From positions 1-64,000 of the IMG/VR virus record IMGVR_UViG_3300006931_000029: 64,000 bases of DNA, one strand, 5' to 3'. The notes beneath the pieces were generated by a model. It searched no databases. It saw only the letters and a list, made by a program, of their open reading frames with translations, and was not told where the DNA came from. A program made the translations under genes and the position numbers. The number at the start of each line of letters is the position of its first letter. Position 1 is the stretch's first letter. Shown in pieces: positions 9,497 to 63,563 of the stretch.

Positions 9497-10202
9497 TCTC
9501 GAGCTTCTCAATCTCGGCTTCGGCTTTTTCGCGTTTCGATTGATCGAGCTGAAGGTCTTTCACCGGACCAGGAAGAGCTCCGCTGAACTTAGCCAAGATT
9601 TCGCCGTAGGTGTACTTCGCCTTTGCCAGGGCGTACTTCTTGACCCAGTCAGCACCGTACACAGGTAGGCGTTCGAGAGGCCACATGGCGTATGCCAGAA
9701 TGCCACAGTGATAGCGTGCAACTGGATTATGGATGTAGAGACACGAATTGATTTCGTCCCACAGCCAGTCGGGTTGAACCGACGTCACGCGAGCCCATGT
9801 TTTTCTCCACCGCAAGAAGGTGTCGTACTCGTCGACGCCTGTTCTGAACAAAGGAGCCGGATCAATGAGATTGCCGTAGAAAATTTCTGTCGGAACTGGA
9901 TTTGGCTCAACGAACCAGACGTTGACCACGCCGAGACCCGGCATTCCACCAAAGCCCAAGTCAACCCCTTGAAGGTATTTGTTGACGTTTGTACTGAGCT
10001 TGATCGCTCCGTACCGCAGAGCTGGACGCCAGATGGAATAATAGCCGATGGCGTCTTGGATCGCGTCGAGAACGTGCTGTGTCGTCAACTCAATCTCCCA
10101 CACAGGAGCGCCAAGTTGGCGCAAAATGTAGTCTTTCAGCTGGTCGTGCGTGTAGCCGATCAGCGGCAGCGTGTCTCGAGATTGGGCAGAAGTCGTCGCC
10201 AT
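9450..10202 (-). CDS. Neck protein, T4 gp13-like
   Basis: LKDYILRQLGAPVWEIEL..AIQDA and WVKKYALAKAK...GEILAKF...LPG signature. Confidence 0.88.
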   Translation of the reverse strand: MATTSAQSRDTLPLIGYTHDQLKDYILRQLGAPVWEIELTTQHVLDAIQDAIGYYSIWRPALRYGAIKLSTNVNKYLQGVDLGFGGMPGLGVVNVWFVEPNPVPTEIFYGNLIDPAPLFRTGVDEYDTFLRWRKTWARVTSVQPDWLWDEINSCLYIHNPVARYHCGILAYAMWPLERLPVYGADWVKKYALAKAKYTYGEILAKFSGALPGPVKDLQLDQSKREKAEAEIEKLETTLKAAQEFAPLQID

Positions 10203-11136: not shown

Positions 11137-11172
11137 GTGCGTATGCGGAAAAAGAACACATTCTCTACTGAT

Positions 11173-50581: not shown

Positions 50582-50709
50582 AAGTAGAAAGAACGCAGGC
50601 CGAAGTCTTGCTCTTTGGGAAATTGCCCGGTGTGCGCTTCTCGCTATTTGCGCAGAATTGAGTTAGCTATTGTGTCTACTCGTTAATCTAAACTCAACCC
50701 GCCCTACGC

Positions 50710-52565: not shown

Positions 52566-54047
52566 TTACTCAGCCTTCTCGGATCGCTCCGGAAGGGTGA
52601 ACTCAACCTTCTCGATGGTGTGAACCATCGCGTCCTTGTCCTGTTCCAGGAGCGACATCATCTTGAACAGCTTGTCTCCGGCGAAACCAGCGATCGCAGC
52701 CACGCGGTCCTCCGGGAAGGCCATCGTGCCCTGACCGTTTAAGTCGAAGCTGTAGACGAACGGCTTCACGCCGAACTTGCGCGTGTAAGCCGACATTGCC
52801 GAGTTGGCGTTACCTGCTCCCATGCCGCCGACCCACGTCTGCATGTCCGAGAGGATCAGCACGCGCGAGTACTTGCGGTTCATTGCCTGGATTGCTGCTG
52901 GCATGTTCGTGCCACCACCGCTGAACTGGAACCCGCGAGACAGTGACATGGTCGAGTCCTTTCGGTTGTAGTTCACGTAGTGGGCAGAGTCGTCGAAACG
53001 GATCAGGTCCGCATCCCACGCCTTGCAGATAACAGCCGCAAAAATCGATGCGATCTGAGACGGCTTGCCGGCCATCGAACCAGAAACGTCGAGGAACACG
53101 ACAGAGTCGCCCTCTAGCTTCGGAACGTTGCCGCAGGACAGGTCGATTGCGTCGTCCAGCGCACCCATAACCTTTCGGGTAGCAGATGCGTTGAGACCGC
53201 CAACGACCTCGTATGCGGTGTGAATCTGGAACGGGAACACGAGGCTCTTGTGGATGGCGTCCGCGTTGCGAAGCTGGTCGCACACGGCATCGATCAACTC
53301 GCTGTCAGCACCCGCGAGGATGTTGCGCAGATTGCGAATCAATGCCAGATAGCCGAGCTTCTTCTCGCGAATCAGCGCGGCCCATGCGGCGGCCTTCAAC
53401 TCCGCCTTGTTCTCGTCGCTCTCAGCGGCTTGACCGGCCTGCGTGAGCTTGGTCTCCCACGTGTCGGCCGGCTGGAGCTTGCCAGTCATCAACAGCTTCA
53501 ACGCCGGAGTCTCCTTCGGGCGAAGCAAGTTGACTGCGTCGATCAGCTTGAACGGCTGGCCGTCTCGGCGATACTTTGCCAGAGCGTAGGCGTCATAGCG
53601 CTGTAGCGCCGCGCCGAGACCCTTCTTCAGGGAGTTCGGAATCGGCTTGCCGTAGGTCGCCATGTAATACGCGAGAATCTCCACCGGGTCGTCGGCACGA
53701 CGAGAAACACGGTTGAAGAAGTCCTTCGTCCATGCCTCACCCTTGACAGTCTTCGCGATCTCGCCGGCCACGATGTGGCTGATCGAGCGCATGCCGAACT
53801 CGTTACGAGCGAAGACGGCGGCCTTTGCCGCGAAGAGCGGGTCGACCTTCTGGAGGAGTTCCTTGACCCGCACGATTGTGCCGGACTCGGAACGATAAAA
53901 TTGATCCTGAACAAAAGTCGTCAGCAAAATGCTGACAAACTCGAGCTTTGAGGACTGGGAATATCCCGGTCCACCTGCTGCGTTGGTGACAACGGTCCTG
54001 CCTGGGACCTTGCGTGCCACCTTCGCGGATGATGCGAACTTAGCCAT
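52566..54047 (-). CDS. rsr: Ro60/TROVE-domain RNA-binding protein (TROVE + vWA)
   Basis: N.AGG..Y, FY, AR.EFGMR, Y.LAKY, TWE..L, ALIRNLRN, S.V.PF, DVSGSM, GGT, SDMQ; AAGGA RBS. Confidence 0.92.
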   Translation of the reverse strand: MAKFASSAKVARKVPGRTVVTNAAGGPGYSQSSKLEFVSILLTTFVQDQFYRSESGTIVRVKELLQKVDPLFAAKAAVFARNEFGMRSISHIVAGEIAKTVKGEAWTKDFFNRVSRRADDPVEILAYYMATYGKPIPNSLKKGLGAALQRYDAYALAKYRRDGQPFKLIDAVNLLRPKETPALKLLMTGKLQPADTWETKLTQAGQAAESDENKAELKAAAWAALIREKKLGYLALIRNLRNILAGADSELIDAVCDQLRNADAIHKSLVFPFQIHTAYEVVGGLNASATRKVMGALDDAIDLSCGNVPKLEGDSVVFLDVSGSMAGKPSQIASIFAAVICKAWDADLIRFDDSAHYVNYNRKDSTMSLSRGFQFSGGGTNMPAAIQAMNRKYSRVLILSDMQTWVGGMGAGNANSAMSAYTRKFGVKPFVYSFDLNGQGTMAFPEDRVAAIAGFAGDKLFKMMSLLEQDKDAMVHTIEKVEFTLPERSEKAE

Positions 54048-54199
54048 GGTGTTTTTCCTTTGTTTGACTGCCACGCGGAATGCGTGGAGAATAGTTGACG
54101 CTACGGACGTTTTTGAAATTGTAAACAAAAATTTGGCGCTCGAAATGCGTTACAGGCTTCGCAATCCGATTACGGTGCCACACGCCAAACATTGCAAGA

Positions 54200-54275
54200 T
54201 GGAGCCCGCTGCCGGAATTGCACCGGCCATCTCTGGAGTACAAAGCCAGGGTCTCGCTCACTAAACGTAACGGGC
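54200..54275 (-). tRNA. tRNA-Thr(UGU)
   Basis: Hand-folded cloverleaf, encoded CCA, UGC T-loop. Confidence 0.85.
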
Positions 54276-54364
54276 AAATGACATCGCACGCGCATGTTGT
54301 TACAGCAAGCGTACCCACTGCGAAACGGTTTAGCGCTTCGATCTGCATTTCGTGCGAAGATGAT

Positions 54365-54441
54365 TGGTGGACCCAGTGGGATTTGCACCCACGATCAAAG
54401 AATTATGAGTTCTCTGCTTTGGACTGCTAAGCTACAGGTCC
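54365..54441 (-). tRNA. tRNA(CAU), probably Ile2
   Basis: GGACCUG acceptor, CU-CAU-AA loop; Ile2 versus Met inferred from body sequence. Confidence 0.8.
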
Positions 54442-54447
54442 AACAAG

Positions 54448-54804
54448 ATGATTTCTAGCCAAAGAAAAATTGTCAAAGAAAAGTTGATATTTCATCGCGG
54501 TCATAGATGCGAAGGTTGCCAGGGCACTCAATGGCGAGGAAAACCAATCCCTTTGGAACTTCATCATGAGACTGACAGTGACGAAGAAAAGGACCTTCAG
54601 CTTCTGTGTCCTAACTGTCACGCTCAAACCCCGAACTATCGAGGGCGAAACAAGAAAGCTGGAAAGATTTGGAGCAATCTCTGCTCGTGCGGTAATCGAA
54701 AACACGTGTGTTCCCCGAGTTGCAGAAGTTGTGGCGCGAAAAGAAGATGGAATGGTGCCCTTGGAGGGAGTTGCACCCTCACGACATGCGTCACTAAGGT
54801 TTAA
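54448..54804 (+). CDS. HNH (homing-type) endonuclease, antisense within the tRNA array
   Basis: CEGC, LELHH, LLCPNCHAQT. Confidence 0.75.
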   Translation: MISSQRKIVKEKLIFHRGHRCEGCQGTQWRGKPIPLELHHETDSDEEKDLQLLCPNCHAQTPNYRGRNKKAGKIWSNLCSCGNRKHVCSPSCRSCGAKRRWNGALGGSCTLTTCVTKV

Positions 54805-54836
54805 GCAAAGCGCGTCTCCTTTTCCGCCACAAGGGC
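54753..54836 (-). tRNA. tRNA-Leu(UAA)
   Basis: Long variable arm, CCA. Confidence 0.85.
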
Positions 54837-54840
54837 AAGT

Positions 54841-54926
54841 TGGTGCCGGCGACAGGAATCGCACCTGCATGGCCCGAAGACCGCTGGATTTTGAGTTCAG
54901 TGTGTATCCTATTCCACCACGCCGGC
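54841..54926 (-). tRNA. tRNA-Leu(CAA)
   Basis: Long variable arm, CCA. Confidence 0.9.
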
Positions 54927-54931
54927 AAAAT

Positions 54932-55008
54932 TGGTGCCCTCGGCGGGACTCGAACCCGCAACCTCGAGGTTAGAAAGCTCTTGCTCTAGTCCATTGAGCT
55001 ACGAGGAC
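54932..55008 (-). tRNA. tRNA-Arg(UCU)
   Basis: Canonical GG D-loop and UUC T-loop. Confidence 0.9.
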
Positions 55009-55013
55009 AAAAT

Positions 55014-55090
55014 TGGCGCCTCAGACAGGACTCGCACCTGCAACCTGCAGTTTAGGAAACCGCCGCTCTATCTAGTTGAGCTACTGAGAC
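55014..55090 (-). tRNA. tRNA-Arg(CCU)
   Basis: Cloverleaf, CCA. Confidence 0.9.
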
Positions 55091-55094
55091 AAAT

Positions 55095-55180
55095 TGGTGC
55101 CCGCGACAGGAATCGCACCTGCATGGTTTTTCAACCACTAATTTCTAAGACTAGCGTGTCTACTGTTCCACCACGCGGGC
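55095..55180 (-). tRNA. tRNA-Leu(UAG)
   Basis: Long variable arm, CCA. Confidence 0.9.
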
Positions 55181-55185
55181 AAAGA

Positions 55186-55248
55186 TGGAGGGAGCGTCCG
55201 TGCTCGGCACCCTGAGCGCTCAGCCACAACCTCAAGCTGTGGACTCCC
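55186..55248 (-). ncRNA. 63-nt CCA-ended mini-cloverleaf
   Basis: GGGAG.../...CUCCC-U-CCA closing three hairpins; no D/T consensus. Confidence 0.5.
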
Positions 55249-55259
55249 ATTTTCAAAAT

Positions 55260-55333
55260 TGGCTCCCGACCAAGGATTCGCACCTTGGCAAAACGAGTCA
55301 GAGTCGTTTGTGCTACTGTTACACCAGTCGGGA
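55260..55333 (-). tRNA. tRNA-Gln(CUG)
   Basis: U1-A72, G73, CCA. Confidence 0.9.
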
Positions 55334-55334
55334 A

Positions 55335-55429
55335 TGGCGGAGGTGAGCAGGTTCGCACTGCGCCGAGCTTTACCCCGGGCCATGTTTAGCAAACATGTGG
55401 GACTCCTAGTTGTCCACCTTTCTACCTCC
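55335..55429 (-). tRNA. tRNA-Ser(GCU), atypical 8/4 fold
   Basis: 8-bp acceptor with bulged A, 4-bp T stem, long variable arm, G73. Confidence 0.8.
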
Positions 55430-55433
55430 AAAA

Positions 55434-55508
55434 TGGTGCCCGCACCGGGAATCGCACCCGGCTCTCCGCCTTGAGAGGGCGGCGAACTAACTGATATTCG
55501 ATGCGGGC
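55434..55508 (-). tRNA. tRNA-Glu(CUC)
   Basis: Cloverleaf, CCA. Confidence 0.88.
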
Positions 55509-55513
55509 AAAAA

Positions 55514-55598
55514 TGGTCGGCATGACAGGAATCGCACCTGCACGGATTTTATCCAACGCCTTCTGAGGACGCCGTGTCTACTGTTCCACCACATGCCG
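55514..55598 (-). tRNA. tRNA-Leu(CAG)
   Basis: Long variable arm, CCA. Confidence 0.9.
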
Positions 55599-55603
55599 AA
55601 AAA

Positions 55604-55679
55604 TGGTCCTCGCTGTAGGATTCGCACCCACAACTTCCTCCGTGTGAAAGAGGCACTCTAACTGTTGAGTTAAGCGAGG
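55604..55679 (-). tRNA. tRNA-Val(CAC)
   Basis: Cloverleaf, CCA. Confidence 0.9.
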
Positions 55680-55683
55680 AAAA

Positions 55684-55878
55684 TTATTCGACGGCTTCGC
55701 AGATGTCGCGAATGAGGGCAAAGTATGCGATGCATTCACCACCTAGTTTCGTCCCTGGAAGAGCATACTGTCCTGAGCATTGGCGCTCGAGGATAGTCCC
55801 CTTTGGGTAAGCAATGCCGACCTTCAAGTCTAGGTAGTCTTCAGTCAGTTGGACCGTTGCTGGTTTTTGAGTCATCAC
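55684..55878 (-). CDS. Small hypothetical protein inside the tRNA array
   Basis: Fills the gap between RNA genes, same strand. Confidence 0.5.
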   Translation of the reverse strand: MMTQKPATVQLTEDYLDLKVGIAYPKGTILERQCSGQYALPGTKLGGECIAYFALIRDICEAVE

Positions 55879-55892
55879 TTTTAGAATAAATC

Positions 55893-55974
55893 GTGCAGAA
55901 AGCGAAGGGCTGTTCGTTGGTTAGTCGCCGTTGAACAGGTAGCATCGTTGGACCCGGACTAACGGGTTCTGCAC
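55893..55974 (-). ncRNA. Three-way-junction RNA with potential kissing loops
   Basis: 8-bp terminal stem; loops carry GUUAGUC and GACUAAC. Confidence 0.55.
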
Positions 55975-55978
55975 AAAG

Positions 55979-56071
55979 TGGCGGAGAGGTGCAGGTTCGC
56001 ACTGCGCACGATTAAACGTGTCCGAGTTTTCGAGGCTCGTGGGACTCCTGATTGTCCTCCTTACTCTCTCC
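55979..56071 (-). tRNA. tRNA-Ser(CGA), atypical 8/4 fold
   Basis: Same architecture as Ser(GCU). Confidence 0.8.
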
Positions 56072-56072
56072 G

Positions 56073-56162
56073 TGGCGGAAGGTAAAGGAGTTGCACCCTA
56101 GCCGGTTTCCCGACTGATCCGCTTTCCAAGCGGTCCCCACTCTACAGCAGGTCCTACCTTCC
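56073..56162 (-). tRNA. tRNA-Ser(GGA)
   Basis: Long variable arm, G73, irregular D arm. Confidence 0.78.
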
Positions 56163-56166
56163 AAAG

Positions 56167-56244
56167 TGGTGCACGCGGAGGGATTTGAACCCCCAACCCT
56201 TCGTTCCGAAGACGAATGCTCTGGTCCAATTGAGCTACGCGTGC
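56167..56244 (-). tRNA. tRNA-Arg(UCG)
   Basis: Canonical elbow, CCA. Confidence 0.9.
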
Positions 56245-56245
56245 A

Positions 56246-56333
56246 TGGCGGAAGGTGTAGGATTCAAACCCACGGCCGGTTTCCCGACTCCGAGGTTCAA
56301 GCTCGGTGCAATAATTCGCTCTGCCAACCTTCC
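56246..56333 (-). tRNA. tRNA-Ser(UGA)
   Basis: Long variable arm; UUUGAAU T-loop with GA in the D-loop. Confidence 0.88.
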
Positions 56334-56340
56334 AAGTTTT

Positions 56341-56546
56341 CGAACCAGTGTAGCCTGGATTCTGTTTTATCCGCACATTTCTCTAAGCCGCTACCACGAC
56401 GTTTGAACGGGAAGCACTACCCTGACGTCTTAATTTGCGTTGCACCTACCGAGGTCCGCGAGCGTTAACTCTCCCTCGTGCTGCTTTGGTGTCCTAGCTT
56501 CCTCAGGCCGATACACTTTCTCGACCCGCGTGCAGTCCTGTATTCG
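56341..56546 (-). ncRNA. rnpB: Minimal RNase P RNA-like gene
   Basis: Ordered motifs GAGGAAGCUAGGAC, GCAACGCAAAU, UAGAGAAAUG, AAACAGAAUCCAGGCUA; the ends pair as P1. Confidence 0.72.
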
Positions 56547-56961
56547 AAGATGGTTCTTGCGCCAATTTGATGCTAAAAACATCAAAAATGCTGCCGATTG
56601 ATTCAGGCGAAAAGTCTGACGGTTTTCGAATCATGACGGCAAAATCGATCTTGCGCACGGCATCTATCAATTTTTCGTCAATATATCCGGACACAATGCT
56701 GACCGGAGTCATTATTTTGTTGGCTCTCATTTCCCGAAAAACGTCTAAGCCGCTACCATCTGGTAGCTTCATGTCCAACAGCACCACGTGAAACTCTCGC
56801 TGCGCCAGTTGATTGATCGCTTCCTGGCACGTCTTAGCCCAGAACACGTGGCATCTGTAACTCTTTGAGGCGTTAATCAACAACTCCGCCAGTAGCTCAT
56901 CGTCCTCAACGAGAAGCACGTCTTTTATGAGATTCTTAGCGTATTCCGCAAGAGTTTTCAT
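56503..56961 (-). CDS. Single-domain response regulator (REC/CheY-like)
   Basis: VLLVEDD, LLDMKLPDGSG, VSG, KP. Confidence 0.88.
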   Translation of the reverse strand: MKTLAEYAKNLIKDVLLVEDDELLAELLINASKSYRCHVFWAKTCQEAINQLAQREFHVVLLDMKLPDGSGLDVFREMRANKIMTPVSIVSGYIDEKLIDAVRKIDFAVMIRKPSDFSPESIGSIFDVFSIKLAQEPSSNTGLHAGRESVSA

Positions 56962-57006
56962 TAAAACAAATATAGACCATGGAACGACGAACCGTTCCCT
57001 GAGAAG

Positions 57007-57080
57007 TGGCACCCGCGCAAGGATTCGCACCTTGGCAAAGTGAGTCAAAGTCACTTGTGCTACTGTTACACCACACGGGT
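57007..57080 (-). tRNA. tRNA-Gln(UUG)
   Basis: Cloverleaf, CCA. Confidence 0.9.
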
Positions 57081-57275
57081 AAAAACCCCGTCGACGGTCC
57101 GCGATCCATCTGGCAGGCAGGCGCATTACGACTCAGCGACGATCAATCGCCTACCGTGACTCGGTCGACTACGAATCTGCGTCCCCTGAACGGAGACAAA
57201 AGCTTTGCCGGCGGCGATCGCATCCGCAGCTTGGGTTCCTCGAGCTCGCCCAAGACTTGCTACTCATCGGCAAAA

Positions 57276-57351
57276 TGGTCCTCGCGGCAGGATTCGCACC
57301 TGCGACCTCTTCCATGTCAAGGAAGCGCGCTAACTGCTGTGCTACGCGAGG
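57276..57351 (-). tRNA. tRNA-Val(GAC)
   Basis: Cloverleaf, CCA. Confidence 0.9.
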
Positions 57352-57352
57352 A

Positions 57353-57429
57353 TGGCTCCGGCAGAAGGGTTCGCACCTTCATCTTCTCGGTTAACAGCCG
57401 AGCGCTCTACTAAGTTGAGCTACACCGAA
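57353..57429 (-). tRNA. tRNA-Asn(GUU), copy with A18/G55 elbow
   Basis: Cloverleaf, G73, CCA. Confidence 0.88.
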
Positions 57430-57435
57430 ACAAAA

Positions 57436-57512
57436 TGGTCCTCTCAGCCGGAGTCGCACCGACAACCTCGTCCTTCGCAGAGACGCGCTCTATCTAGTTG
57501 AGCTATGAGAGG
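57436..57512 (-). tRNA. tRNA-Arg(GCG)
   Basis: Loop CU-GCG-AA. Confidence 0.88.
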
Positions 57513-57516
57513 AAAT

Positions 57517-57593
57517 TGGGGCGGCTAACGGGATTCGCACCCGCGGTCCTCTGATTCACAATCAGATGCTTTTACTGCTAAGCTATAGCCGCC
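57517..57593 (-). tRNA. tRNA-His(GUG)
   Basis: Encoded G-1 and C73. Confidence 0.9.
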
Positions 57594-57599
57594 ATAAAT

Positions 57600-57684
57600 T
57601 GGTGCGGATAGGGAGAATCGCACTCCCATGGCTGTCAACCGTTACGTTCTCAACGTAGTGTGTCTACTGTTCCACCATATCCGC
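57600..57684 (-). tRNA. tRNA-Leu(GAG)
   Basis: Long variable arm, CCA. Confidence 0.9.
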
Positions 57685-57854
57685 AAGAGCTGGGATTTGC
57701 ACCCTTTACCGCCTCGCTCAGGCGTCTTGTCCGACGATGACTTTTGCTACTCGCAACCATCGTCATTATTTTAGGTTGCTTTGGCGCACCACCGACTGAT
57801 CCTTCGAGAGCTGACGACAGCATTAAGGACCCTCTATGAACAAAATGAACAAAA

Positions 57855-57930
57855 TGGAGCCTAAGAAGGGATTTGCACCCATGACCCACGCTTTACGAAA
57901 GCGTTGCTCTACTAACTGAGCTACTTAGGC
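57855..57930 (-). tRNA. tRNA-Thr(CGU)
   Basis: Cloverleaf, CCA. Confidence 0.9.
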
Positions 57931-57934
57931 AAAG

Positions 57935-58159
57935 TTAAGCTTCACCGCCTCGAGGCGGTGCGGGACGCTTGATCCCAAAGGTTAGGTTCTCGAATGCCCT
58001 ACAGTCGTTCGAGTCAATGGACTTGAACCTGCCGTCATCTAGCTGAACCAAGAAAATTGGATTGTGGTCGATGCCGTAATCGATCATCAGGATTGCGCGT
58101 CCAGGACCGAGAGGTGTCTGCACCCATATCGGCGCTGAGAACTCGTGGGTAATGGTCAT
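57935..58159 (-). CDS. Small conserved phage protein inside the tRNA array
   Basis: 74 aa, TPLG.G.A...IDYG..HN. Confidence 0.6.
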   Translation of the reverse strand: MTITHEFSAPIWVQTPLGPGRAILMIDYGIDHNPIFLVQLDDGRFKSIDSNDCRAFENLTFGIKRPAPPRGGEA

Positions 58160-58179
58160 TCCACTACCAGAACGCAAAA

Positions 58180-58255
58180 TGGAGCTGAACATGGGACTTG
58201 CACCCATCATCACCTGCTTACCAAGCAGGGTCCGCGCTATCTCGGAGTGATCAGC
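58180..58255 (-). tRNA. tRNA-Thr(GGU)
   Basis: Cloverleaf, CCA, atypical D arm. Confidence 0.85.
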
Positions 58256-58257
58256 AA

Positions 58258-58344
58258 TGGTCCGCCTGGAAGGACTTGCACCTACGTAGACCCGAAGGTC
58301 AATGCGTTTACAGCGCATCGCAATTGCTACTCTGCCACAGGCGG
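58258..58344 (-). tRNA. tRNA-Tyr(GUA) with C1-G72
   Basis: Long variable arm, A73. Confidence 0.9.
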
Positions 58345-58349
58345 ATAAA

Positions 58350-58425
58350 TGGAAGCACCGACGGGATTTGCACCCGTGACCTTGGGCTTATGAGTCCCGC
58401 GCTCTACTAACTGAGCTACAGTGCC
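58350..58425 (-). tRNA. tRNA-Met(CAU), elongator-like
   Basis: GGC acceptor start, CU-CAU-AA. Confidence 0.82.
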
Positions 58426-58433
58426 ACTGAGAA

Positions 58434-58523
58434 TGGTGGAACGGGAGGGACTTGCACCCCCGACGGTGGGTTCACCACATGGGCTTAAAAGGCCCGACCA
58501 ATCGCTGCTATGGGGACCGTTCC
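58434..58523 (-). tRNA. tRNA with Lys anticodon (UUU) and a long variable arm
   Basis: CU-UUU-AA loop; GUGG/CCAC variable stem. Confidence 0.8.
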
Positions 58524-58529
58524 AAAAGT

Positions 58530-58604
58530 TGGCTGGGAAGGTTGGGATCGAACCAACGACCATCGAGTTAACAGCTCGCCGCTCTGCCACTGAGCTACAT
58601 CCCA
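58530..58604 (-). tRNA. tRNA-Asn(GUU), canonical-elbow copy
   Basis: GG D-loop, UUC T-loop. Confidence 0.9.
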
Positions 58605-58612
58605 ATGAAAAA

Positions 58613-58798
58613 TTTGCCTTGGCGTGGACCTTCAGCAGTGACCGCAGTCCAACCTCGCTTTTCCCGCTGAGCTTTCTGTTTCGACCGAAGTCTTCCGCCG
58701 CGATGTCTCGAACGACCAGGCCGGTATTAGCGACCCGAAGCGGTATGAACAACCTAGCGCGCCACACTTGAGTCTCCCTCGTAGAGCTCCAAGGCAAA
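58613..58798 (-). ncRNA. ~186-nt structured RNA of unknown family
   Basis: 10-bp terminal pairing UUUGCCUUGG/CCAAGGCAAA, UUCG-capped hairpins, fills the tRNA gap. Confidence 0.55.
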
Positions 58799-58799
58799 A

Positions 58800-58875
58800 T
58801 GGCGGGAATGAAGGGATTCGCACCCTCGGTCTCTTGCGTGACAGGCAAGCGCTTTAACTGCTAAGCTACACCCCC
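58800..58875 (-). tRNA. tRNA-Asp(GUC)
   Basis: G73, CCA. Confidence 0.9.
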
Positions 58876-58882
58876 GTGAAAA

Positions 58883-58990
58883 TGGTTGAGGCCCAGCTTG
58901 TCGTCTGCGCTATGCCCAGCTGGAATCGAACCGAGTCTAGTTAGGGACTTGCACCCCGCTTCGCGACAAGATCGCACCGCACGATCCTCA
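58883..58990 (-). ncRNA. CCA-ended RNA with two T-loop hairpins
   Basis: UGAGG/CCUCA-ACCA, CUUGUCG/CGACAAG, GGG-UGCAAGU-CCC and GG-UUCGAUU-CC. Confidence 0.6.
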
Positions 58991-58994
58991 AAAA

Positions 58995-59071
58995 TGGTCC
59001 GGACGACAGGATTCGCACCTGCGGCCTCTTGATCCCAAATCAAGCGTTCTACTAGGCTGAACTACATCCGG
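58995..59071 (-). tRNA. tRNA-Pro(UGG)
   Basis: C1-G72, A73. Confidence 0.9.
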
Positions 59072-59077
59072 ATAAAT

Positions 59078-59187
59078 TGTGCCGAAGACGTTTCTGCATT
59101 TGTAAGCCACTTGGTTCCCTGCGGGAATTGCTGGTAACAGGGAGACGGTTTCGAACCCGTGTCTTCATGACCCCCATCGCTGACACA
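59078..59187 (-). ncRNA. Circularly permuted tRNA-like RNA on a terminal stem
   Basis: UGUGUC/GGCACA ends, GAAGAC/GUCUUC, T arm first, then UCCCUG..ACCA..CAGGGA. Confidence 0.5.
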
Positions 59188-59191
59188 AAAG

Positions 59192-59270
59192 TGGGAGCAG
59201 GAGTTGGATTTGAACCAACGATTTCGACCTTATGAGGATCGCGAGGACGGCCATGCTCCTCTACCCTGCC
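59192..59270 (-). tRNA. tRNA(CAU), initiator-like body
   Basis: A11-U24 D stem, UUCAAAU; lacks the three G-C anticodon-stem pairs. Confidence 0.75.
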
Positions 59271-59421
59271 ACAAAAAGATTATTGACACGACTCGCACGG
59301 ACCATCGTCTAAGTTGCAAGTTTTTGGCTTCTCGCCTTCAGGCGCAGGAGCATCTTGCACGAACTCGCCGATGTCGTCATCGGGAGACAGAGTCGACGGT
59401 TTTGGATCAGTCATGCGCTAT

Positions 59422-59598
59422 CTACAAGTTCAATCCGTGCAGAACTCCGATTTTGTCCAGCGCATAAACCACGAAGATCAGAGCCAAGATAGCACCGATG
59501 ATTTTCAACGGCGTACCTTGAGCGAACTGACCAGCTACCCAGAAGATCAGGTAGAGCACGAGACCGACTATGAGGATGACGATTAGTGATTCGATCAT
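59422..59598 (-). CDS. 58-aa two-helix membrane protein
   Basis: Two hydrophobic segments; GAGGAGG upstream. Confidence 0.7.
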   Translation of the reverse strand: MIESLIVILIVGLVLYLIFWVAGQFAQGTPLKIIGAILALIFVVYALDKIGVLHGLNL

Positions 59599-59634
59599 GG
59601 TAAACAGACATAGTCTGCCCCTCCTCGTTCCAAA

Positions 59635-59710
59635 TGGTGGGAACAGCTGGAGTTGCACCAGCGACACGCAGATTTTCAGTCTGCTGCTCTACTGACTGAG
59701 CTATGTCCCC
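59635..59710 (-). tRNA. tRNA-Phe(GAA)
   Basis: Cloverleaf, CCA. Confidence 0.92.
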
Positions 59711-59714
59711 AAAG

Positions 59715-59847
59715 TGGTGGGAAGTGCAGGATTCGAACCTACTTGCTTGGCTTTTCAGGGCTTTGCTTTTCCGAAGTAACCCAGTCGGTCACTGCGATCT
59801 TGCGACCGAGAATTAGGTGACTAGGTGTTGTCTTGTTAAGACTTCCC
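59715..59847 (-). ncRNA. tRNA body with Y-like module replacing the anticodon arm (chimera 1)
   Basis: GGGAAGU/ACUUCCC-ACCA, T arm, internal ..UUCUC-GGUC-GCAA-GAUC-GCAGUGA-N9-UUACUUC. Confidence 0.72.
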
Positions 59848-59851
59848 AAAG

Positions 59852-59927
59852 TGGCACGGACGGCAGGAATTGCACCTGCGACCTGGAGATTTGGAGTTTC
59901 CCGCTCTACTAATTGAGCTACGTCCGT
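59852..59927 (-). tRNA. tRNA-Trp(CCA)
   Basis: A1-U72, G73. Confidence 0.9.
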
Positions 59928-59928
59928 A

Positions 59929-60004
59929 TGGAGAGGGATGTCGGAATTGCACCGACGCATGACGCTTTTGCAGAACGTTGCCTTTCTGACTTGGCTAATC
60001 CCTC
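59929..60004 (-). tRNA. tRNA-Cys(GCA)
   Basis: U73, CCA. Confidence 0.88.
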
Positions 60005-60008
60005 AAAG

Positions 60009-60083
60009 TGGTGGAAGCAGTGGGACTTGCACCCACAACCCTTCGCTTAAGAGGCGAGAGCTCTACTATTGAGCTATACTTCC
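60009..60083 (-). tRNA. tRNA-Lys(CUU)
   Basis: Cloverleaf, CCA. Confidence 0.9.
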
Positions 60084-60088
60084 AAAAA

Positions 60089-60218
60089 TGGTGCGCGCGC
60101 CTGGATTCGAACCAAGTCTAATCTTTTCGTAGAAGAAGTAACCCAATCGGTCACTGCGTCTTGCGACGAGAATAAGGTGACTGAGATATTTGTTGTGCTA
60201 CCATTACACTACACGCGC
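60089..60218 (-). ncRNA. tRNA body with Y-like module in the anticodon arm (chimera 2)
   Basis: Intact acceptor, D and T arms plus CCA; permuted module closed by a GCAA loop. Confidence 0.75.
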
Positions 60219-60225
60219 AAAAGCT

Positions 60226-60360
60226 TTCCGAGAGAAAAACGAGGACGGTAGAAGACGCGGTGTTAAGTCGCGTTGCCCAACCATTAGGCGTATTCTCCAG
60301 TTTTGGCGGAGGATATTGGATTTGAACCAATGAAGTAACCGTTTCTCTCACTACTCGGAA
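60226..60360 (-). ncRNA. YrlA-like RNA with a permuted tRNA domain
   Basis: UUCCGAG/CUCGGAA ends, UAGUGA..UUACUUC, then T arm, acceptor 3' strand + GCCA, spacer, acceptor 5' strand, D arm. Confidence 0.72.
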
Positions 60361-60362
60361 AA

Positions 60363-60490
60363 TGGTGGACTGCACGAGATTCGAACTCGGACGCTCGCCC
60401 CCGTAGGGCCGCGAGCGGTTCTACCTGCCGTGGCGGACGGATTGATTACCGTCGGACTTGATTCGTCGTTACGCGTTGGCGATACAGCCC
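60363..60490 (-). ncRNA. 128-nt tRNA-like RNA with Ala identity and no anticodon arm
   Basis: GGGCUGU/GCAGUCC-ACCA (G3-U70, A73), UUCGAAU T arm. Confidence 0.65.
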
Positions 60491-60494
60491 GAAA

Positions 60495-60572
60495 TGGTCG
60501 GTCTGGCCGGATTCGCACCGGCGATCTTTCCGCCCCGAACGGAACGCGATAACTAGGCTACGCTACAGACCG
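60495..60572 (-). tRNA. tRNA-Pro(CGG)
   Basis: C1-G72, A73. Confidence 0.9.
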
Positions 60573-60576
60573 AAAA

Positions 60577-60652
60577 TGGTCCTCCCGATAGGATTCGCAC
60601 CTACGACCCCACGCTTATCAAGCGCGTGCTCTAACTGCTGAGCTACGAGAGG
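60577..60652 (-). tRNA. tRNA-Ile(GAU)
   Basis: Cloverleaf, CCA. Confidence 0.9.
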
Positions 60653-60656
60653 AAAA

Positions 60657-60792
60657 TGGTGCAGCGTGTAGGATTCGAACCCACGTAAGCGGTTTGGATT
60701 TGAAGTAACTCAATCTTCACTGCGTCTTGCGACGAGAAAAGTCAGACTGAGACTTGTTAGGACCGCTGTCCTGGCCACTAGACGAACGCTGC
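60657..60792 (-). ncRNA. Complete tRNA body with Y-like module inserted in the anticodon loop (chimera 3)
   Basis: Anticodon stem GCGGU/ACCGC intact around the module. Confidence 0.78.
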
Positions 60793-60800
60793 AAATTTTT

Positions 60801-60929
60801 CCGTGAGAACAATGGACTGGGAGGTGAAGACCTTTCGGCCCTCGGGTGGAATTGAACCACCATTGATTCCTTAATAGGGAATTGCTTTACCATTAAGCAA
60901 CGAAGTATCCCATATTCCTCACTGCACGG
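60801..60929 (-). ncRNA. Y-like RNA enclosing an unpermuted D/anticodon/T cloverleaf
   Basis: CCGUG/CACGG ends, CAGUGA..AUACUUC, then D arm, AUUCC-CUAUUAA-GGAAU and T arm. Confidence 0.7.
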
Positions 60930-60939
60930 AAATTGTAAT

Positions 60940-61001
60940 CGGGAGAAAAGAATGTCGACGGGTGTATTTCCCCAAGAAGTATCCGTAGACGTCACTACCC
61001 G
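60940..61001 (-). ncRNA. Minimal Y-like module
   Basis: CGGG-UAGUGA..AUACUUC..UUUUCU-CCCG. Confidence 0.7.
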
Positions 61002-61010
61002 AAAAAGCTC

Positions 61011-61082
61011 TCTGCGAGAATAAAGTGGACTCGGTGTTTTTCGATGTTGATGTTGAAGTAACCGAACCCGTCACTGCGCAGA
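61011..61082 (-). ncRNA. Minimal Y-like module
   Basis: UCUGCG-CAGUGA..UUACUUC..UAUUCU-CGCAGA. Confidence 0.7.
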
Positions 61083-61085
61083 AAT

Positions 61086-61162
61086 TGGTGGACCGGATGG
61101 GAGTTGCACCCACCACACGGTGCTTGCAAAGCACTGTCGCCGCTAACGGTACATGCCGGCCC
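61086..61162 (-). tRNA. tRNA-Ala(UGC)
   Basis: G3-U70, irregular D arm. Confidence 0.85.
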
Positions 61163-61169
61163 AATAAAG

Positions 61170-61247
61170 TGGTGCGTCAAGAGGGAATTGCACCCACGAC
61201 ATCCTCTTTGGAAGAGAGGTGCTCTAAACTAACTGAGCTATTGACGC
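61170..61247 (-). tRNA. tRNA-Gly(UCC), A73
   Basis: GCG acceptor start, CU-UCC-AA. Confidence 0.9.
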
Positions 61248-61251
61248 GAAA

Positions 61252-61311
61252 CGGGAGAAAAGTCGACAAGGTGTTTTTCATACAAAGAAGTAACCCTGTC
61301 ATCACTGCCCG
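61252..61311 (-). ncRNA. Minimal Y-like module
   Basis: CGGG-CAGUGA-UGACAGGG-UUACUUC..ACCUUGUCG-ACUUUUCU-CCCG. Confidence 0.7.
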
Positions 61312-61315
61312 AAGA

Positions 61316-61394
61316 TGGTGCGTGTGGCGGGATTCGCACCCACGAAATCCTCGTTGGCAACGAGGCGCTGTAGACTAGGCTGAGCCACACACGC
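61316..61394 (-). tRNA. tRNA-Gly(GCC), A73
   Basis: Cloverleaf, CCA. Confidence 0.9.
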
Positions 61395-61398
61395 AAAT

Positions 61399-61474
61399 TG
61401 GTGCCCGCGACGAGATTCGCACTCGTGTTCTCGCCTTGAAAGGGCGGCGTCCTGGTCTCCTAGACGACGCGGGC
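61399..61474 (-). tRNA. tRNA-Glu(UUC)
   Basis: Cloverleaf, CCA. Confidence 0.9.
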
Positions 61475-61475
61475 A

Positions 61476-61549
61476 TGGCGCACGAGGATGGAATTGAACC
61501 ACCGACCAACCAGTGGAAACCGGCTGCTCTTTCTCTGAGCTACTCGTGC
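61476..61549 (-). tRNA. tRNA-like gene with 6-nt anticodon loop (undetermined)
   Basis: GCCGG-UUUCCA-CUGGU; other arms intact. Confidence 0.65.
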
Positions 61550-61785
61550 AAAATTGTTCGGGCAGAGGCTGTCAAAGCATTTAACGCATCGCGCACCTCT
61601 GCCCTAGTTTTCTATATTCAAAAGAACGATACACACCTTCGACAACTCTTAGTTGAGTCTATTGGTGACCGTGTTGGCCCCGATAGCTATTCCCATCGTT
61701 TGTCTGGCCTAGATGGGTTGCCAGGAGGGATTTTACCCTCAGAGTTGACCGGCTTGCGCCGGAAAGTTGTTTGAATTCAGATACG

Positions 61786-61817
61786 AAAAAACCCGACCTC
61801 TTGCGAGAGTCGGGCTC
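61786..61817 (-). terminator. Intrinsic terminator (attenuator) upstream of the tRNA array
   Basis: GAGCCCGACUCUC-GCAA-GAGGUCGGG-UUUUUU. Confidence 0.85.
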
Positions 61818-61847
61818 AACTAAACCTAAGGTTCCTTTTCTGGCTAC

Positions 61848-61994
61848 CTAGGCGGTTGAACCCTCCTCGATGGGCAAATTATGCCCTTGGGTCGTCTTCG
61901 CGCTACGGCTTTCATATCCGGCCGACAGCACGACGCCGCAATCCTGGTTAAACCAGGTTTTTGGCTGTATCGATACTGTTGATCTTAAGGACAT
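61848..61994 (-). CDS. 48-aa leader peptide (pan-codon attenuator uORF)
   Basis: MSLRSTVSIQPKTWFNQDCGVVLSAGYESRSAKTTQGHNLPIEEGSTA*; its last codons are complementary to the terminator 5' arm. Confidence 0.7.
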   Translation of the reverse strand: MSLRSTVSIQPKTWFNQDCGVVLSAGYESRSAKTTQGHNLPIEEGSTA

Positions 61995-62123
61995 GGAAAG
62001 TGAAGATTGGTTGGTTGAAAATTTGGTGCGAGCTGATTTATCTACTCGCGTCGTGTGAAACTGGAAGAACTTAGACTCTTAGGACCAAGATTTGGTCCAG
62101 GCTGACAAGGTTAATTTGGAAAT

Positions 62124-62209
62124 TGGTGGCGAAAGAAGGGATCGAACCTCCGACCTGGTCGTCCATTTTTAAGGTGGCCGTCCATGCTCTACCGCTAAGC
62201 TATTTCGCC
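62124..62209 (-). ncRNA. tRNA-like RNA with extended anticodon arm
   Basis: Perfect acceptor, D and T arms plus CCA; ~29-nt anticodon arm. Confidence 0.65.
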
Positions 62210-62212
62210 GAC

Positions 62213-62282
62213 TTTCAAGAGAACACCGAGGAAACAGGAACAATCCAGATTACTACGGCCAAAACCTGGCGTTCTCTTGAAA
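62213..62282 (-). ncRNA. Long-stem RNA (15-bp terminal helix)
   Basis: UUUCAAGAGAACGCC/GGUGUUCUCUUGAAA. Confidence 0.45.
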
Positions 62283-62283
62283 T

Positions 62284-62357
62284 TGGAGCCGACCGGGGAT
62301 TAAGAAACACCCCTCTTCCGTCCCATGGGACGGCGTGCGCGGTTACACTATGACGGC
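62284..62357 (-). ncRNA. Degenerate tRNA-like RNA with collapsed anticodon loop
   Basis: CCGUCCC-AU-GGGACGG, 11-nt T-loop, CCA. Confidence 0.55.
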
Positions 62358-62363
62358 ATAAAG

Positions 62364-62469
62364 TGGTGCCAAGGCCGACATCGCTGCCGGCGGCGAAACC
62401 CTGCCCGCTGCATTAGTCGCGTCCGAAGACACGTCGAGAGCAGTGGCGTTTGATTCCACGGGGCTTGGC
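62364..62469 (-). ncRNA. 106-nt CCA-ended tRNA-like RNA with a long central arm
   Basis: GCCAAG/CUUGGC-ACCA; central helix capped by CUUCGG. Confidence 0.55.
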
Positions 62470-62475
62470 ATAAAT

Positions 62476-62830
62476 TGGTGGAGATGGCGGGAGTTGAACC
62501 CGCGTGCTAAAAGAGAACCGAATCTGAGTCTACGCGCGTGTCCTATTTTAATGTCCAGGCGGACCTATCTTTGGCTGAGTTTTTGAGTTCCGCCTCAGCC
62601 GGCAGCGAAATCAGTAGCGTAGTTTTTACGCAGCACGATCTACCCCGCTCATCTTAATCGTGCCACGCGCAGCCTAATTAGGCCGCGAGACGGAGCTCGT
62701 TGGAACGAGCGAACGCCTTGACAATGGTGTTGCCATTTGTGGTTTGCCAAGTCTTGTTATGGAGGTCGACCTAGCAGTCTCCAGCGCGCATCAGGTATCT
62801 GTCTCCTAAAGTAGAATCCAGAACATCCCC
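62476..62830 (-). ncRNA. ssrA: tmRNA, tag (A)GNTIVKAFARSNELRLAA
   Basis: GGGGAUG/CAUCUCC-ACCA with G3-U70, GGAUUC 5' motif, T arm, tag ORF 62678..62734 ending LAA-TAA. Confidence 0.93.
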
Positions 62831-62883
62831 AGTGCTATGTCAAAAGAACTTATCGACGACCGAAGTCACCGACAACGTCGCAG

Positions 62884-62914
62884 AGTTTACTGCTCAATGA
62901 GTCAATGTAAACAA
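62884..62914 (-). promoter_or_regulatory. Sigma70-like early promoter heading the RNA island
   Basis: TTGTTTAC-N17-TAAACT; the same motif recurs at other operon starts. Confidence 0.6.
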
Positions 62915-62927
62915 AAAAGATGCGTTC

Positions 62928-63563
62928 TCACGCATTTTGTTCAACTGGCCGAACGCCGTGAATTCCCTGCTTCAGGACATACCAGTAGAGTTTTCCTTCG
63001 AGTCGAATCTGGTTGGCGCGGCTCTTGTCGACGTAAATTTTGTCGCCGATCTTGATTTGGGCGAGCACCGGGTCTTCGCTCGATGGCAGAAGATTTCCGA
63101 TTTGCACGACCTCAAACTCTGGAGGTGGAATGGCCGAATCCGGCAGATAGAGACCGCCGATCATGTCGATCTTGATGTCACGAACGAGCACCCAGTCGCC
63201 GAGCACATGAAAATTTTCAAGCGTGATCTGCGGAGAATCCAGCTTCGCGAATGCGTCTCCTTGATGCATGATCATCACGGGCTGACGACGGTCACCTTCA
63301 CCGACAAAATGGGTCACGCCCATTTCGAACATCTTGTTGCATTGGTAGATGACGATGTCGCCGACCTTGACGGCAATTTCGACCGTGTCTCCGATGGACG
63401 CAACTCGGCCAAGCCGATGGACTTGGTTGGCATTGGAGGGCATCAGGATGATGCCAGTCGCTTCTTCCTGCACAGCGGTGAGAGCGACTCGGTGTTTGAC
63501 TGGACGCACGCAGCTTCTCAGGTCAATCTCTGCGGGTTTGAAAGGGACGACGTTGGAACTCAT
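62928..63563 (-). CDS. Tandem GroES-like co-chaperonin
   Basis: Two repeats: RP..HRV..GIILMP..V.SIG..VKVGD and LGDWVLV..GGLYLP..VVQIG..IKIGD. Confidence 0.8.
   Translation of the reverse strand: MSSNVVPFKPAEIDLRSCVRPVKHRVALTAVQEEATGIILMPSNANQVHRLGRVASIGDTVEIAVKVGDIVIYQCNKMFEMGVTHFVGEGDRRQPVMIMHQGDAFAKLDSPQITLENFHVLGDWVLVRDIKIDMIGGLYLPDSAIPPPEFEVVQIGNLLPSSEDPVLAQIKIGDKIYVDKSRANQIRLEGKLYWYVLKQGIHGVRPVEQNA

Follow-up and report, generated by a model that had tools for sequence, protein, structure and literature searches.

We found that a 48-codon reading frame encoding all 20 amino acids, followed by a hairpin and an intrinsic terminator, is conserved in a large soil phage and in all five further sequences in which we could recover the locus, and that it may let the progress of a ribosome decide whether the roughly 37 tRNA genes downstream are transcribed. 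This reading rests on sequence alone, and we hold it tentatively, at somewhat less than even confidence. The stretch analysed (the window) comprises 64,000 nucleotides, positions 1 to 64,000 of the 225-kb IMG/VR contig IMGVR_UViG_3300006931_000029, a T4-like-portal myovirus from rhizosphere soil with no close cultured relative (among phages in GenBank, portal identity is at most 25%).

A preliminary description of the region had proposed a pan-codon leader-peptide attenuator gating a phage tRNA array, and we first re-examined the features on which it was based. The observation itself was confirmed, with every listed sequence feature found to be correct. The ORF at 61994..61848 on the minus strand has an ATG start, 48 sense codons and a TAG stop, with 40 distinct codons, none used more than three times, and the Ser, Thr, Val, Gly, Gln, Lys and Glu codon sets that had been listed as systematically sampled are as given. 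Its last codons, GGGUUCAAC (61863-61855), pair with GUUGAGCCC (61820-61812) through 8 Watson-Crick pairs and 1 G-U pair, and the inner helix contains the UAG stop (61850-61848). The last three bases of this hairpin (61863-61812), CCC 61814-61812, are also the first three bases of a strong terminator (described as spanning 61817..61786; stem and U-tract at 61814..61786), CCCGAC-U-CUC/GCAA/GAG-GUCGGG followed by U6, which has a 9-bp stem with one bulged U, a GCAA loop and a folding energy of -13 to -15 kcal/mol. The 121-nt stretch folds far better than shuffled sequence (z = -5.5).

We next asked how often such an ORF would arise by chance. For 48 uniform draws the expectation is 33.4 +/- 2.3 distinct codons, in agreement with the earlier estimate of about 33, and the probability of at least 40 is 0.003, or about 5e-4 jointly with all 20 amino acids. 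Against the coding sequence of the phage itself the ORF is more extreme: in 1299 48-codon windows of real genes the mean is 29.9 distinct codons and the maximum 39, and P is 4e-5 for draws from the phage's codon usage. It is the only one of 246 ORFs of 40-60 codons in the window with both properties, so that about 0.1 such ORF is expected per window. The codon statistics alone are therefore only suggestive, whereas conservation of the ORF, hairpin and terminator in five further sequences shows that the element is not chance.

The genomic context, in contrast, required correction. The preliminary description placed the element before 41 tRNAs, but ARAGORN finds 36 tRNA genes after it (54203..61549, minus strand) and Rfam adds 2-3 more, with no standard tRNA-Ala called, and the element lies inside the RNA cluster rather than at its head. 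Upstream on the same strand are a sigma-70-like promoter, TTTACA-16-TAAACT (62884..62911), which is the likely start of the transcript reaching the element, a tmRNA (62476..62830; ARAGORN, and 95 bits in Rfam), two CCA-ending tRNA-like RNAs, and, directly before the ORF-bearing RNA, a tRNA (62127..62209; Rfam tRNA, 48 bits) with normal acceptor, D and T arms and an encoded CCA but an oversized, insert-bearing anticodon arm of 23 nt where 11 are expected, which is conserved in the homologs. Downstream, a 240-nt structured leader separates the terminator from the first array tRNA. The order of ORF and tRNAs on one strand is conserved in the window and in the homologous sequences L002, L003 and L009.

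The existence of homologous loci lacking the ORF and its complementarity had been named in advance as an outcome that would refute the attenuator idea, and we searched for relatives. Using the neighbouring double-Cpn10 (GroES-like) gene and a conserved DNA word, we recovered the homologous region from L002 and L003 (neighbouring protein 90% and 88% identical to that of the window) and from L004 and L009 (65%), while L015 was found through the peptide itself; the five represent four more lineages. All six sequences keep the same AUG, the same stop position (UAG in five, UAA in L003), the hairpin and the terminator, and all have 47-51 codons, 39-41 distinct codons and all 20 amino acids. The element is present wherever the RNA cluster is present; more distant relatives (GroES-like protein 45-49% identical) have no RNA cluster beside that gene. 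The family is small: three exact-pattern scans returned only the same phage or the known lineages, no member was found in IMG/VR beyond this contig or in GTDB genomes, and the window holds no paralog.

The evolution of the ORF gave two kinds of evidence pointing in opposite directions. On the one hand, the reading frame is under selection: between invariant anchors, the five length-variable segments inside the ORF differ only by 3 or 6 nt, corresponding to at least six events, all multiples of 3, whereas in the rest of the same RNA and in the downstream leader only 4 of about 20 indels are (hypergeometric P about 9e-4 by our calculation), and no in-frame stop has arisen despite 20-27% nucleotide divergence over the 577-nt element (16-24% within the ORF). 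On the other hand, the ORF does not evolve like an ordinary protein-coding gene of this phage. Variable columns are 18/16/18 at codon positions 1/2/3, pN/pS is 0.42-0.89 against 0.13-0.39 in the neighbouring GroES-like gene, and synonymous sites change 2-3 times more slowly than in that gene (pS 0.18-0.37 against 0.53-0.75). The codon adaptation index is 0.56-0.61, the same as for random codons (0.564) and below the 1st percentile of real-gene windows (0.747 +/- 0.055). A frame that must stay open, a weakly constrained peptide and dominant RNA-level constraint are what a regulatory leader ORF overlapping alternative RNA structures should look like.

Evidence that the ORF is translated is indirect only, since no expression or translation data of any kind exist, and the conserved frame, start and stop leave this question undecided. 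The absence of a clear Shine-Dalgarno sequence, previously given as a caveat, is uninformative because only 3 of 37 phage genes have one, and a position weight matrix of start-site context gave no signal even for real genes. The 45 nt before the AUG (61995..62039) contain only 1-3 G in all six homologs (P(<=3 G) 0.001 for 45-mers of the window), although their sequence is poorly conserved and rich in indels. This tract fits a single-stranded candidate ribosome landing region free of other start codons, although a Rho-loading site is an alternative reading. The antisense frame is open in 5 of 6 sequences, but it has no conserved start, is broken in L003 and contains a terminator-like hairpin on the plus strand, so that we judged it an unlikely cause of the 3n indels.

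Folding the region with and without the ribosome-covered segment had been proposed beforehand as a check of the switch, and we performed it by partition-function folding of each homolog up to the 3' arm of the terminator. Without a ribosome, the shared CCC pairs with the hairpin GGG with probability 0.82-1.0 in five sequences and 0.35 in L003, in which the terminator already dominates (P 0.65), leaving a 6-bp stub of -3 to -5 kcal/mol set back 3 nt from the U-tract. Masking stop-12 to stop+14, an assumed ribosome footprint, gives the full terminator with probability 0.88-0.99 in all six. In these models, the antiterminator is thus mutually exclusive with the terminator and masked by a ribosome at the end of the ORF. 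The toggle nonetheless involves just 3 of 9 terminator pairs; there are only six sequences, and the nucleotides of the toggle are invariant in them, so covariation cannot test the alternative pairing. Only 3 compensatory pairs occur in the whole ORF-bearing RNA, one of them a G-C to A-U change in the candidate antiterminator hairpin (61812..61863), whose apical mini-helix varies between CC/GG and GC/GC (read by eye from the alignment). The terminator is nearly invariant in the six sequences: the CCCGA, GAGGUCGGG and U6 parts are identical, while the inner 5' arm and the loop vary.

Whether the terminator gates the array was examined from its surroundings. It is the only canonical U6 terminator in the 8.7-kb RNA cluster, and the only sigma-70-like promoter conserved across the window, L002 and L003 is the one before the tmRNA, none lying after the terminator. 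The RNA beginning 16 nt after the U-tract is structured and covaries on the same strand, with 10 compensatory pairs in four sequences and many G-U pairs over the 61550-61790 stretch: 6 in a domain closed by long-range helices (61632..61775) and 4 in a hairpin directly before the first array tRNA (61560..61604). It is therefore transcribed in this direction, most simply by read-through, which probably happens. The earlier caveat that a GTTCTT motif at 61622-61627 could be a bypass promoter nevertheless stands, and dependence of the array on read-through was not settled by these observations. The motif GTTCTTTTGA (61618..61627) is also found just before the tmRNA (62849) and the odd tRNA (62224), and GTTCTYTT is conserved 10 nt before the tmRNA, 6 nt before the odd tRNA and about 70 nt before the array, as well as lying 6 and 14 nt before the start codons of two long ORFs. 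It may be a phage promoter element, which would give the array its own start, or a processing site, and we could not choose between these. GTTCTTT is not enriched as a word (9 occurrences against 13 expected by chance), so that only its positions and conservation stand out.

Taken together, the interpretation offered in the preliminary description is partly supported, and the explanation we favor, tentatively, is a ribosome-dependent transcription attenuator inside one long operon of translation RNAs. In this view, transcription would start upstream of the tmRNA and produce the tmRNA, the two tRNA-like RNAs, the odd tRNA and then the ORF-bearing RNA, on which a ribosome would load at the G-poor tract and translate the ORF. 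A ribosome reaching the UAG would cover the 5' arm of the hairpin (61863-61843), freeing the CCC so that the full terminator forms and transcription ends at 61786. If the ribosome is absent, late, or stalled at any of about the first 40 codons, which by our geometric estimate leave the 5' arm free when they occupy the A site and already include all 20 amino acids, the hairpin would form first and take the CCC, and the polymerase would read on into the structured leader and the array, so that phage tRNA supply would rise when translation falters. Of these steps, our analysis establishes the conserved anatomy and the conservation of the frame, and supports the switch by thermodynamic models only, whereas translation itself, the coupling of ribosome and polymerase, the dependence of the array on read-through and any link to tRNA depletion are inferred.

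Three other explanations were weighed against this one. It is less likely, but possible, that the locus is a small gene or dual-function RNA with an ordinary terminator, the 47-51-residue peptide or the transcript acting in trans, the terminator simply ending a unit made of the tmRNA, the tRNA-like RNAs and this RNA, the array starting near the GTTCTTTTGA motif, and the overlap of hairpin and terminator having no regulatory role. The conserved frame with 24 invariant residues, the calling of the ORF as a gene by two pipelines, and the promoter-like placement of GTTCTYTT before each RNA block and two protein-gene starts would fit, and small ORFs within phage tRNA regions are common. However, the lack of third-position bias, the high pN/pS and the random-like codon usage speak against it, the structured RNA beyond the U-tract needs transcription across or from the terminator, and no conserved sigma-70-like promoter follows it. 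No Pfam family matched the peptide, and a word-indexed search of 5.8 billion proteins and a full HMMER scan of 1.84 billion representatives found only two gene-called members of the same family plus one spurious repeat protein, with no homolog outside this clade.

About as doubtful is an untranslated structured ncRNA, such as a stable sRNA or a processing or assembly element of the RNA operon, with an incidental frame and a terminator that marks its 3' end or is leaky. Constraint at all codon positions, the fold z-score and conserved hairpins, the random-like codon usage, a neighbourhood consisting only of structured RNAs and the largely open antisense frame agree with this, and the strong nucleotide conservation together with a long, nearly invariant hairpin inside the first half of the ORF (codons 6-23; 61925..61979) would also fit a trans-acting RNA. 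The 3n indels, the absence of in-frame stops, the conserved AUG and stop position and the G-poor tract conserved in composition only argue the other way, and no family of Rfam 15 matched in 61550-62126 apart from noise at E>1, whether searched at E<=1 over 11 kb or at E<=10 over the element. The role of the long hairpin is unknown, a possible RNA polymerase pause hairpin being inference only. Least likely is that only the hairpin and terminator matter, as a protein- or processing-dependent signal such as a binding site for a phage antiterminator or an RNase, without any part for translation. The hairpin has a conserved A-rich apical loop and a conserved GGAGGG, and the cluster encodes a Ro60-like protein and an RNase P RNA-like element, so RNA-processing factors are present, but this does not explain frame conservation over the 140 nt upstream, and no candidate binding protein was identified.

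The proposal that the leader senses the whole tRNA pool was considered separately. The accompanying prediction that codon diversity and pairing, but not the peptide, would be conserved in relatives was not borne out as stated, since both peptide and nucleotide sequence are conserved (67-73% amino-acid identity). Retention of all 20 amino acids is explained by sequence conservation, because 18 of them sit in invariant columns and Ala and Val are common, and was rejected as independent evidence of selection. Distinct codons number 39-41 where 36-38 would be expected after the observed 21-33 substitutions, a consistent but weak trend (P 0.01-0.4 per pair, the pairs not being independent). A general sensor of decoding capacity, in which shortage or cleavage of almost any tRNA, for example by host anticodon nucleases, delays the ribosome, suppresses termination at 61786 and switches on the phage's own set of about 37 tRNAs, is thus neither excluded nor shown, and we regard it as unlikely on present evidence. 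It would constitute a feedback loop in which tRNA genes are regulated by translation of a pan-codon test ORF; the link to anticodon-nuclease defence is pure inference.

Among described systems, the leader-peptide attenuators of the trp, his, phe, thr and ilv operons (PMC1183508) share a short leader ORF followed by an intrinsic terminator, an alternative hairpin sharing nucleotides with the terminator whose 5' arm is covered by a ribosome reaching the end of the ORF, and RNA constraint overlapping the ORF. Here, however, there is no run of regulatory codons for one amino acid, codon diversity being instead close to maximal, the leader has 48 codons against 14-32, the cargo is tRNA genes rather than biosynthetic enzymes, the predicted state without translation is read-through, unlike the trp leader, no 1:2 protector pairing was found, and the element is phage-encoded and lies about 0.9 kb into an operon after other RNA genes. 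As it lacks the defining codon run and would regulate a different cargo, we treat it as a departure from that family rather than a member. The E. coli pyrBI attenuator has a similarly long leader (44 codons) without an amino-acid-specific run and an output that depends on how closely the ribosome follows the polymerase, but its ORF runs through the terminator and a closely following ribosome prevents termination, whereas here the ORF stops 34 nt before the terminator stem and an arriving ribosome is predicted to promote termination. T-box riboswitches would likewise couple a terminator/antiterminator choice to the tRNA pool and act on genes of the translation apparatus, but they bind one uncharged tRNA directly and have no ORF; a T-box was rejected here, as no RF00230 match appeared at E<=10 and the position corresponding to the UGGN bulge reads UUCA, so that the tRNA 3'-end pairing site is absent. 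In the attenuator-derived dual-function RNAs rnTrpL/peTrpL of Sinorhizobium (PMC6614838, PMC7298713), the terminated leader and its peptide may themselves act in trans, which would fit the strong conservation seen here, although there is no sequence similarity and no target or function is known for this RNA or peptide.

Phage tRNA arrays are now seen as replacement parts against host tRNA-targeting defences and host shut-off (PMC10264068), while how their expression is controlled is essentially unknown, and full-text searches of the library available found no paper linking phage tRNA genes with leader-peptide attenuation. If the model holds, this would be the first attenuator that regulates tRNA genes and the first whose leader reads the whole codon table rather than one amino acid, which would give a compact, transferable sensor of global decoding capacity and a direct way to test whether phages meter their own tRNA supply. 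Even if the attenuator model fails, the region is worth attention as a tmRNA-to-tRNA operon with at least five unclassified conserved structured RNAs, an RNase P RNA-like element and a Ro60 gene, in a phage lineage without cultured relatives. At the 5' end of the ORF-bearing RNA, the consensus fold also contains a conserved hairpin, GGACCAA/UUGGUCC (62082..62098, minus strand), with one compensatory C-G to U-A change.

Other features of the RNA cluster and its surroundings were also noted. Between the tmRNA and the leader ORF, two RNAs on the minus strand, at window 62364-62469 and 62284-62357, were found to end in CCA and to have covarying acceptor-like stems (GCCAAG/CUUGGC against GCCGAG/CUCGGC in relatives), although neither ARAGORN nor Rfam recognises them as tRNAs. 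They are followed by a tRNA (window 62127-62209, minus strand) with canonical acceptor, D and T arms and an encoded CCA, but with 23 nt where the 11 central anticodon-arm positions should be (loop CCUUAAAAA). ARAGORN assigns different anticodons to its homologs (Phe-aaa, Ala-tgc, and Leu-tag).

Between the terminator and the first tRNA lie two unclassified structured RNA domains (window 61632-61775 and 61560-61604, minus strand), which together have 10 compensatory pairs in four sequences. The first of these contains a possible pseudoknot (CCCAUC/GAUGGG, covarying with CCCAC/GUGGG). The motif GTTCTYTT(GA) is conserved in all lineages directly before the tmRNA (62840-62849), the odd tRNA (62215-62224), and the array leader (61618-61627), all on the minus strand, and was also found 6 and 14 nt before two protein-gene start codons (50588-50594 and 11151-11157, minus strand). 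It is either a promoter element or a processing site; before the tmRNA, it follows a hairpin whose sequence covaries between lineages.

Within the array itself, the first tRNA (window 61476-61549, minus strand) has a 6-nt anticodon loop and was reported by ARAGORN as 'tRNA-???' with the anticodon 'tc'. This tRNA is conserved in L003, one of the homologous regions recovered from relatives (9605-9676). A tRNA with an insert of about 55 nt (window 60092-60218, minus strand; Rfam 37 bits) and a weak tRNA-Sec-like hit, below threshold (58438-58523, minus strand; 28.7 bits), were also detected. In addition, a match to the bacterial class A RNase P RNA, squeezed into about 214-238 nt, lies inside the tRNA array at window 56335-56548 (minus strand) and at L003 13997-14234 (plus strand). 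With scores of 46.9 and 43.3 bits (E 4e-12 and 2e-10), below the gathering score of 100, it may be a minimal phage-encoded RNase P RNA. In the window, it overlaps the 3' end of a receiver-domain ORF (56503-57126).

Directly after the tRNA array, a Ro60-like protein composed of TROVE plus VWA domains is encoded (window 52566-54128, minus strand), and the gene is conserved in L002, a further homologous region, and in L003. A weak tRNA-like hit (54203-54275, minus strand; 35 bits) lies next to it and is a candidate Y RNA. Across the whole window, only 3 of 37 long ORFs have a Shine-Dalgarno-like sequence, which suggests a host, itself not known, with SD-independent initiation or many leaderless mRNAs. 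The 211-residue protein encoded at window 62928-63563 (minus strand), which is made of two Cpn10 (GroES) domains in tandem, is conserved in all relatives and served as the anchor for finding them.
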